DNA of 64,000 bases from Macrostomum lignano (lineage: Eukaryota), in NCBI GenBank assembly GCA_002269645.1, contig NIVC01000136.1:62001-126000 (forward strand), given 5' to 3'. The translations under genes and the position numbers were made by a program. Of this stretch, positions 35,201-38,200 are shown one piece after another; the stretch's first letter is position 1, and each line of letters starts with the position of its first letter. The notes under the pieces were generated by a model that saw only the letters and a list, made by a program, of their open reading frames with translations, did not search any database and was not told the origin of the DNA.

Positions 35201-38200
35201 TAGCTGCTGTCTATGGGGATCTGGGATCTGGGAGAAGCTGCCCAGTCTATGGGGATCTGGGATCTGGGAGAAGCTGCTCAGTCTATGGGGATCTGGGAAA
35301 AGCTGCCCAGTCTATGGGGATCTGGGATCTGGGAGAAGCTGCTCAGTCTATGGGGATCTGGGAAAAGCTGCCCAGTCTATGGGGATCTGGGATCTGGGAG
35401 AAGCTGCTCAGTCTATGGGGATCTGGGAAAAGCTGCCCAGTCTATGGGGATCTGGGATCTGGGAGAAGCTGCTCAGTCTATGGAAATCTGGGATCTGGGA
35501 GAAGCTGCCCAGTCTATGGGGATCTGGGATCTGGGAGAAGCTGCCCAGTTTATGGGGATCTGGGATCTGGGAGAAGCTGTAGATCTGGGAATTGGGAAGA
35601 ATAAGAATGTAAGTTGCTGAGGAGAATCAATAACAAGGTGCTCACCTCAACCCTAGCCAGGTCGCTCCTGTACTTGATATTAGCCTGCTGCAGATGATGC
35701 GACCAAGTGGTGAACAGAGTAGTTCTCATGTGCTGATCAAAGTAGCCAGCATAGGCCATGAAAGCTGAGCTGAGCAGGCAGTCGCCAACAATAGTCTCCA
35801 TCTGAGCTTTGAAAGCATCTGAGCCACTCTCCCAGCGTTTCTTCTCGTTGCTAAGCGAGGACAGCAGCGCAACGGACCGGCTGACCTTGGCTTCAACCGA
35901 GGCCAGATCGGATTTGATAGCCTGAGCCTGGCTAATCAGAGCCGCGTATTCCTCTTTGTACTTGGCGATGCTTTTCTCCAGGCGGCTGATCTCGGCTTGG
36001 CATTCCTCAGCATTCCGCCTGTTGGATCCGGCCTCAACCTCCAGGGCTTTGAGCTCGGCACGGAGCGGCTCAACCTTCTGCAGCATCTCGGCGTAGCTGA
36101 TCTGGGCGATGGCCCACTTCACCATGGGGCCGCAGGCTATGCTGGCCCGGTTGACTTTCTCGAAGTTGTAGTCGGGATTGGACAGGTACTTCTTCTTCAT
36201 GGTCTCGCGGATGGAGTCGCTGCATTTCGTAATTAAATTTTGCAGTTTTTTTGTTAAAGCGATTTGTATTTGATAACTTGAGAAAATGTGAAAGCAAAAG
36301 CATGTTGATCCTTGATCACCAATATAAAGATGGAGGTAATTAATTAAGCGAACCAGCTTAATCATAAAGACAATGCCAGGTGTAGGAAAGATTTATATGC
36401 GATCGTACTACTGATTGGAATACTACTGATTGATATTGCGAATTTGGCGGCTGGCAAATATTTTTTCTCTACGAAATTATAAATAAATTTGTAGCCTACT
36501 CAACTTATACTACTTTTAGTAGCTTAGTACTGCTTGAGATGCAAAAATCCAGCTGAATACAATTACGAGATAACTGTCGAGAAGACCGATATCTTGAACG
36601 CAAATATACTACTTAACAAGTAAGTAGGTTTCAGATTTTTTTTATAAATCTTTCGAATCTTTACAGTGGTTTTTGAAATCGAAAAAATCGAAGTGCGTCA
36701 TTTATTGACTCATAATAAATAGGATAAGGAAACTCGGCCACCTGTTTAACTATATAGAGGAGTTCGCTCTCTGATTGAACTTACGGCATCTCCAGTGTCT
36801 TATAATTAACAATACTTGGCACAAAGGTGTCTTTAACAATTACACCTTGAATCTGCTTCCAATCTGAGGACTTCTCTCCCAACAGTAGGCAGATGGATTC
36901 CACGGCCATTTTCACCGCCGGCGGCGGGTTCTTCATCGCTTTGATCTCCTGAATATCCTTCCGCTTGATGCCCTCAACGGCTGGTTAGCGGCGGATTTAA
37001 GAAAAGTATGGGGAGGGAGGGGCGAATCGGATTAGCAAAGCAACGAATTGAGCCGCTGACTCACCTGAGATCTTCAGTCTGATAATTGAGCAGCTGAGAT
37101 ATGAAATTGTCTCGCATTAGAATGGTTCGGATGGACTTCCAGTCTTGAGTAGGCTCGCCTAGCATGGTGCACACGGACTCCAGGGCCAGCTTCACTAGCG
37201 GTGGCGGGTTTGGCAGGCTGCGGACTTCCACCAGCTGCTGACGGGTCACCGCGTTCACGGCTAGATAGCAGCGAAAGTAGTGCATAGCGGATGGGGAAGT
37301 TGCGGTAATGCCAGTGGTATGCATGGAGCTTGGCAGCGGTCGGTTCAGCCATCGAGTTTTATAATTATAAAATTAAATTAAGTGAGCCAGAATACCAAGA
37401 CTTCAGTAGTATGGTGAGTAAAATCCAACACCTGTTTCTAGCTGTACACTACAGATTCTAATTACATCCCACATCTCCAAACAGCACATACAAAATCCCA
37501 AACTGCACATCCCACATCCCAAACCGCATATCCCTAATCCCAAACGGCACATCCTACATCCCAAACTGCACATCCCACATCCCAAATCCCAAACCGCTCA
37601 TCCCAAATCCCAAACCACTCATCCCAAATCCCAAACCGCTCATCCCAAATCCCAAACCGCTCATCCCAAATCCCAAACCGCTCATCCTAAATCCCAAACC
37701 GCTCATCCCAAATCCCAAACCGCTCATCCCAAATCCCAAACCGCTCATCCCAAATCCCAAACCGCACATCCAAAATCCAAAACTGCACATCCCACATCCC
37801 AAACCCCAAACCACATATTCCAAATTCCAAACCACACATCCTAAATCCTAAACCGCACATTATAAATCCCAAACTGCACATCATAACCCTAAACCGCACA
37901 TCCCACTTCCCGAACTAGAGATTTCATAATCATAACTGATATGAAACAGTCGAATATTTGAGCAAGCAAAAACTAAAACAAAGCAACTCACCCTGCTTAG
38001 CCTCTGACACGGCTGGCTCCACCTGACTAAGCTCGGCCGTGACCTCCTTGGTCTTCTCAGCGATGAAGATCTCTTTCTCGGCCAGACTCTTCTGTAGCAT
38101 CTCGCCCTTCTTCTTGCTCTCCTCGGCCACCTGTTGATCCTGCACCATCTGCTTCAGCTTCTGGTTGGCCTGCTCGTTCATTCGCTCCAGTTCGCTGCGC

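Follow-up and report, generated by a model that had tools for sequence, protein, structure and literature searches.

The window analysed here, a 64,000-nucleotide (nt) stretch of Macrostomum lignano contig NIVC01000136.1 (assembly GCA_002269645.1, positions 62,001 to 126,000 of the forward strand), carries on its minus strand a gene for the heavy chain of cytoplasmic dynein-1 (26254..51330), in which part of the microtubule-binding domain (MTBD) is encoded by two alternative tandem exons, termed A and B. The gene model comprises 15 exons plus this A/B pair and lacks the N-terminal ~170 codons; a splice-aware exon chain gave an open frame of 4456 codons with either A or B. The Pfam domains DHC_N1, DHC_N2, AAA_6, AAA_5, AAA_7, AAA_lid and DYN_lid were found in a 7.1-kb exon, and the Pfam domain MT ("microtubule-binding stalk of dynein motor") was detected in both isoforms with scores of 104.4 and 104.1 bits. 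All the named relatives of the gene were cytoplasmic dynein 1. Judged by these matches, the gene is cytoplasmic dynein-1, and exons A and B are both of the dynein-1 type.

Exon A (37260..37065, minus strand) lies at about 56% of the gene span and is followed by exon B (36980..36785, minus strand). Each exon is 196 nt long and runs from phase 1 to phase 2; in A and B alike, the first 2 nt finish a split codon and the last 2 nt open the next one, which leaves 64 whole codons between the junction residues (A)...(S) in exon A and (A)...(P) in exon B. The borders read ...ctatctag|CCGTGAAC ... TCTCAG|gtgagt for A and ...ctaaccag|CCGTTGAG ... GATGCC|gtaagt for B. The upstream constitutive exon (37992..38562, minus strand), coding for coiled coil 1 (CC1) of the stalk, ends at the donor CAGG|gtgagt with 1 nt of the split codon, while the downstream constitutive exon (35646..36219, minus strand), coding for MTBD helices H5-H6 and coiled coil 2 (CC2), begins after the acceptor tgcag|CGACTCC with S or P as its first residue. 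Three introns of the same strand separate these exons, namely the intron upstream of A (37261..37991), which contains a 21-bp minisatellite of ~20 copies at 37464-37905, the 84-nt A-B intron (36981..37064), and the intron downstream of B (36220..36784). The best branch-point match in the A-B intron is CTAAT, located 33 nt from the donor of A and followed by a pyrimidine tract. The splice sites of exon A fit the consensus best of all in the window, with CAG|gtgagt as its donor, whereas both sites of B are weaker than those of A, the acceptor in its pyrimidine run before the AG and the donor in its exonic part (GCC|gtaagt).

Translation of the spliced frames showed that the upstream exon remains open into the downstream exon through A as well as through B. 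When both exons were included, a stop appeared two codons into B (..EDLSR*), and when both were skipped, a stop appeared after 7 codons. Since 196 nt equals 3n+1, use of exactly one of the two exons is the sole productive outcome. Aligned without gaps, A and B encode the same amino acid at 25 of the 64 whole codons (39%), with a nucleotide identity of 52%; the BLOSUM62 score of this alignment was 173, compared with -53 +/- 16 (maximum 27) in 100,000 shuffles (z = 13.9), and tblastn recovered one exon from the other at E = 1e-18 to 1e-19. The GC content at third codon positions (GC3) of the two exons was 0.61-0.67, which makes the window too GC-rich for Schistosoma mansoni. No third exon copy was found within the window by tblastn and self-mapping, nor were other duplicated exons of the gene. 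These data confirm that A and B are a true tandem-duplicate exon pair in a cytoplasmic dynein-1 heavy chain. The architecture given for the pair in a preliminary description of this DNA was thus borne out: direct reading and the coordinates agreed with the equal length of 196 bp, the shared phase and the intact GT-AG sites; the gap-free alignment and the frame shift upon inclusion of both exons or neither were reproduced; and the four junctions it had proposed (37992>37260, 37992>36980, 37065>36219 and 36785>36219) were all exact. Its remark that exon B is missing from the list of open reading frames (ORFs) is correct as well, because the stop-to-stop frame of B spans just 67 codons, but its statement that B has no ATG is not, as in-frame methionines occur at positions 16, 25 and 65 of the 66-residue peptide AVEG...LEMP.

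We then compared the pair with related sequences. Protein searches gave isolated B-type ORFs with 68-77% identity to B and 36-41% to A. Both exons were found in three further species, represented by locus L001 (A 5815-6010, B 6080-6275), loci L004/5/6 (A 1001-1196, B 1431-1626) and locus L007 (A 1010-1205, B 1497-1692); in all of them each exon is 196 nt long with intact AG/GT sites, and A always precedes B. The GC content of L004 is 32%, and this locus may be schistosome-like. At the protein level, B orthologues share 67-77% identity and A orthologues 53-75%, compared with 36-47% between A and B; the window's A is 53-66% identical to its orthologues in L001, L004 and L007. Synonymous sites were saturated (proportion of synonymous differences, pS, 0.72-1.0), and the proportion of nonsynonymous differences (pN) was 0.13-0.25 for B and 0.14-0.32 for A; identity at the first, second and third codon positions was 78/83/39% for B and 66/84/38% for A. 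Flanking introns of orthologues were 13-37% identical, which equals the random level. In the exon tree, the A-types came together with 78% bootstrap support and the B-types together with the UniParc protein P0154 also with 78%, and the window's own A and B were paired in 0% of the replicates. This grouping by type indicates that the duplication is older than these species. The comparison of substitution rates suggested in the preliminary description therefore has a definite outcome, with pN well below the saturated pS in both exons and B neither decayed nor neutral, and these comparisons of coding sequence show that both copies have been kept by purifying selection.

The position of the window gene among dyneins was examined with a 307-residue neighbour-joining (NJ) tree, in which the window, L001, Hydatigera, Dibothriocephalus and a cestode-like UniParc sequence formed a clade with 93% bootstrap support. 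The stretch after the MTBD, in the downstream exon, has motifs common to cestode proteins, including DLARVE. Canonical insect DHC1 fragments (Anopheles, ant and Apis) were strongly unlike the window gene. An identity with Drosophila Dhc64C was considered and rejected, because the insect DHC1 fragments are too different and the gene groups with cestodes. From these comparisons alone, the gene would be placed in a neodermatan-like flatworm other than a tapeworm, most probably a fluke whose genome is fairly rich in GC.

Cestodes themselves have a single exon of this kind. Three cestode loci (L002 4965-5160, L003 1072-1267 and L010 5047-5242) each carry one B-type 196-nt exon between the same flanking exons, and this exon shares 77% identity with B but 39% with A. 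Between the flanking exons of these three loci there is no room for an A copy and no trace of one. In the annotated Hydatigera taeniaeformis protein P0382 the B-type exon is spliced, after ...TEEIT, to the downstream exon, and in P0154 a B-like exon stands between spliced flanks. These B-only genes and spliced proteins imply that B, by itself, makes a working MTBD segment of dynein-1. A rival view would be that exon B is a duplicate in decay or out of use, with A alone being spliced, and the weaker acceptor pyrimidine run and the weaker exonic donor part of B would agree with such a pseudo-exon. However, the frame and splice sites of B are intact in four species, where the exon shows strong purifying selection and a codon-position pattern typical of coding sequence; moreover, B is better conserved than A and is the sole copy in cestodes, spliced there into annotated proteins. 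A B that is intact and constrained in four species rules out decay, and we regard the pseudo-exon explanation as highly improbable.

The same data raise the opposite explanation, that B is constitutive in this species, as in tapeworms, and that A is unused or rarely used. That the sole exon of cestodes is B-type, and that A orthologues (53-75%) are less conserved than B orthologues (67-77%), would fit such a situation. On the other hand, A is intact and exactly 196 nt long in all four species, its pN of 0.14-0.32 against saturated pS and its codon-position identities of 66/84/38% point to maintained coding function, and no splice sites in the window match the consensus better than those of A. 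We therefore consider a constitutive B to be very unlikely. Within the sequences compared, B is nevertheless the more constrained copy, which turns around the view of A as canonical and B as exotic. The simplest history would be that the exon was duplicated in an ancestor shared by flukes and tapeworms, that B then diverged and that A was lost in tapeworms.

The preliminary description had placed the swapped segment at the end of CC1 and in MTBD helices H1-H4, and had described A as canonical and B as axonemal-like. The first of these assignments was supported by the match to human DYNC1H1 residues 3295-3360 and by an AlphaFold model of the stalk tip of the B isoform (predicted local distance difference test, pLDDT, 90.6), in which the exon segment accounts for helices H1-H4 and the final turns of CC1. 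The second did not hold. In a search of the PDB, A aligned without gaps to human DYNC1H1 3295-3360 with 78.7 bits and B to 3295-3358 with 74.4 bits, whereas the best axonemal chain reached 26.8 bits with A and 29.4 bits with B; dynein-2 (DYNC2H1) gave 13-17 bits. Identity to human dynein-1 is 57.6% for A and 52.3% for B, so that A is slightly nearer the general metazoan sequence. A flap in the MTBD is a feature of many axonemal dyneins (PMC6629372); B, which aligns ungapped to dynein-1, has no flap-type insertion between H2 and H3, and, as shown above, it is the better conserved of the two exons.

Structural comparison gave the same picture. A and B align without gaps to the mouse and human dynein-1 MTBDs (PDB 3ERR, 3J1T, 6RZB and 5AYH), and the B model superposes on such dynein-1 structures with template modelling (TM) scores of 0.93-0.94 at 1.3-1.5 A and ~60% identity. 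With the flap-bearing axonemal MTBDs (DNAH7 6RZA and Chlamydomonas dynein-c 2RR7) it has the general six-helix MTBD fold in common; however, those alignments are gapped, with 23-32% identity and scores of no more than 29 bits, and B is without the flap insert. The view that exon B gives a cytoplasmic dynein an axonemal-type MTBD can draw on the higher scores of B than of A against DNAH1 (29.4 and 21.5 bits) and Chlamydomonas DHC9 (27.6 and 16.7 bits). Against it, the dynein-1 score of B (74.4 bits) is 45 bits above any axonemal match, the site of the H2-H3 flap holds neither gap nor insertion, the fold fits dynein-1 (TM 0.93, 60% identity) rather than the axonemal structures, and B clusters with cestode dynein-1 exons. 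Taken together, these observations leave an axonemal-type B next to no probability.

The A and B isoforms differ at 39 of 64 residues. With the exon numbered from its first residue, the mouse residue number equals 3292 plus the position, so that positions 6, 7 and 45 correspond to mouse K3298, K3299 and R3337; K3299 and R3337 were named as microtubule contacts in a 4.1 A cryo-electron microscopy study (PMC6629372). The B-types have in common D9, I10, Q11 and an extra basic residue at position 8, all in H1, a further basic residue directly following H1 (position 17), M25 in H2, and V54 just before H4. At position 45, in H3, they carry Leu or Gln, so that none of them retains the arginine corresponding to mouse R3337. 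The A-types keep R45 and have T32-M33 in common in H2, within a lineage-specific CTMLGE motif. Compared with the mouse and human dynein-1 MTBD, the B segment thus lacks the R3337 contact; position 6, the equivalent of K3298, is Thr in the window's A but Lys in its orthologues. The MTBD core (NPP, VK.A.ES.C, DW and F..I.N) is kept in both exons. On these residue patterns, an effect on affinity or on the H1-linked coupling of stalk registry is plausible as a hypothesis.

A different explanation would be that both exons are used but that the split is purely regulatory, serving cell-type expression and making no meaningful biochemical difference. Both exons keep the MTBD core and fold alike, as this explanation predicts, and a Gln at the R3337 position is present in working fungal dyneins. 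Nevertheless, the residues that set each type apart are conserved within it despite saturated synonymous sites, and they sit in the contact helices H1 and H3, a pattern expected under selection for distinct properties. A purely regulatory split is therefore unlikely in our assessment.

Two side observations concern related modules in other proteins. An isolated exon-like ORF, P0191 (64 aa), combines a B-type H1 (RKDIQEIKA) with A-type or canonical H3-H4 (LRGTVMRENFISQIVNF), and is thus a mosaic of the two types in some other species. Separately, nine proteins of 460-1280 aa, a length atypical of dyneins (P0149, P0168, P0231, P0239, P0272, P0291, P0262, P0263 and P0274), contain 3-5 tandem units resembling the dynein CC1-end/H1-H3 segment (..L.E[LIV][KR]S...PP..V......); on this pattern, they may constitute a family of repeated MTBD-like modules.

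Overall, we think it likely, on the comparative sequence evidence, that the pair stems from an old tandem exon duplication in flatworm dynein-1, with one exon used per pre-mRNA and two versions of the microtubule interface as the result. In this model, each pre-mRNA would keep exactly one of A and B, and transcripts with both exons or neither would yield no useful product, presumably being targets of nonsense-mediated decay. The outcome would be two motors that are alike except in the last turns of stalk CC1 and in MTBD helices H1-H4. Their likely function would be to provide two microtubule interfaces, or two H1/CC1 couplings that set stalk registry, with the two versions suited to different cells, stages or microtubule types. 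Alternative use of A and B in this species, and any accompanying difference in affinity or processivity, is an inference.

Several points weigh against this model. The flatworm placement rests on the 307-residue NJ tree with only two named cestodes, and a shorter region of 191 residues supports it at only 32% bootstrap. A search for the spliced junction of the upstream exon with B in JGI metagenome contigs gave no match, and no conserved intronic pairing or motif that could direct the A/B choice was found in the three introns. Finally, since the fungal dyneins mentioned above also have Gln at the position of R3337 (position 45), loss of this arginine alone is no proof of changed binding.

As for the means by which one exon might be chosen, competing intronic RNA pairing of the kind seen in Dscam was rejected, as the inverted repeats were 10-12 nt long and no more than expected by chance. 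The orthologous introns had no k-mers in common beyond the splice sites. The A-B intron measures 84 nt here, 69 nt in L001 (with TACTAAC near the donor), 234 nt in L004 and 291 nt in L007. Steric hindrance as a universal mechanism was rejected in view of the 234- and 291-nt introns of two species; it is possible in some species but not general. Flatworms splice very short introns too.

The 196-nt exon, with identical boundaries and length, is present in vertebrates too. In the DYNC1H1 gene of the grenadier fish Coryphaenoides rupestris (locus L008; GCA_002895965.2, PIJE02022797.1), two tandem 196-nt copies (1037-1232 and 1416-1611) were found, which have intact AG/GT sites and the same phase and are 71% identical in protein. 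The first copy groups with human with 94% bootstrap support, indicating that the duplication was independent. In the deposited C. rupestris protein P0003, the two copies are linked to each other via a cryptic site. From its genomic arrangement, this locus looks like an independent candidate for a mutually exclusive pair in a vertebrate dynein-1. Another pair of tandem 196-nt copies (3268-3463 and 4050-4245) occurs in L009, an intron-rich invertebrate DHC1 (ENA ERZ21930224 ctg35799l), where the first copy is canonical or A-like (71% to human) and the second is B-leaning (58-62% to B-types) but keeps the arginine equivalent to R3337. Nine related ORFs were found across ENA, Logan and JGI samples.

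These data suggest that the 196-nt exon seems prone to duplication and retention. It is conceivable, although we would put the chances at clearly below even, that this exon is a recurrent "tuning knob" of dynein-1. An ancient A/B pair in parasitic flatworms would then provide two motors with unlike microtubule interfaces, B would have become fixed in tapeworms, and the exon was duplicated independently in a teleost and possibly in L009. If the isoforms do differ in affinity, processivity or tubulin-isotype preference, the pair would represent the first natural isoform switch in the track-binding site of dynein-1, and possibly a parasite-specific feature as well.

The remainder of the window contains other genes and numerous repeats. 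On the minus strand, a secreted fibrinogen-related protein with Fibrinogen_C in two exons is encoded at 7406-11143 and an MRG-binding protein with an Eaf7 domain at 23825-24442; an ankyrin-repeat exon (26-592) and a PDZ-domain exon (61650-62336) lie on the same strand. The MRGBP-like ORF has no close named relative, its best match being a bivalve protein (48%), and it gave no insect matches. An exact look-up of one neighbouring ORF matched no record, and Rfam and tRNA scans across the window yielded no pointer to the species. Minisatellite arrays with units of 19-68 bp (15634-16074, 22122-23591, 28524-29113, 32184-32596, 33596-34517, 35133-35579, 37464-37905 and 50534-50909) occupy many dynein introns as well as flanking DNA, and one 66-68 bp unit forms arrays both at 15634-16074 and within the dynein intron at 28524-29113. 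Two long polypyrimidine/polypurine arrays, at 2369-3494 and 57378-58238, account for the extreme GC and AT skews of these places, with CTCTCC.. on the plus strand at one and GAGAGGAGAG at the other; the two appear to be one repeat family in opposite orientation. In addition, an interspersed repeat recognised by common translated strings occurs in at least three places (~14979-15551, 24568-25214 and 27930-28235), of which one falls within an intron of the dynein gene.

The usual view of cytoplasmic dynein-1 is that of a single heavy chain, with variety being ascribed to its adaptors and accessory chains. If splicing does make a conserved choice by which four of the six MTBD helices are exchanged, this would add variety at the interface between motor and track itself, and two known contact positions fall in the swapped segment. 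Exons A and B also provide a natural sequence pair with which the roles of H1 and H3 in determining affinity and processivity can be explored. The contrast between flukes with both forms, if the species so regarded are indeed flukes, and tapeworms with B only points to microtubule biology that is particular to each lineage. Little is known of a conserved alternative track-binding domain in dynein-1. No DYNC1H1 pair is mentioned in two surveys of human mutually exclusive exons, and the searched literature yielded no published MTBD assignment or functional study of the corresponding Schistosoma mansoni pair discussed next.

The caution in the preliminary description that such exons might already have been reported in invertebrates proved to be right. 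A mutually exclusive exon in S. mansoni DHC1 was published by Pillmann et al. (2011, BMC Bioinformatics 12:270; PMC3228551) and was also cited by Kollmar (2016; PMC5100056); in the 2011 study, the DHC1 pair served only as a software test case, and neither coordinates nor domain assignment nor function were given (PMC3228551). The phenomenon itself was thus noted for Schistosoma in 2011, and the value of the present data lies in the placement in the MTBD and the conservation. The S. mansoni exons are of equal length, strongly homologous, have split codons at both ends and lie near the middle of the gene (PMC3228551). Likewise, the window's exons are both 196 nt long with phases 1 and 2 and lie ~56% along the gene, again in a cytoplasmic dynein of a flatworm. 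Given these matching features, the two are likely the same pair in different flatworms and, by this comparison, probably orthologous. A broader parallel is offered by the muscle myosin heavy chain clusters of arthropods, in which homologous exons of equal length and phase swap one element of the motor domain and so tune its mechanochemistry (PMC3228551, PMC3912159). In contrast to those clusters, the window gene has one cluster with two members, and what it alters is the track-binding domain of a microtubule motor, not the catalytic core of an actin motor.

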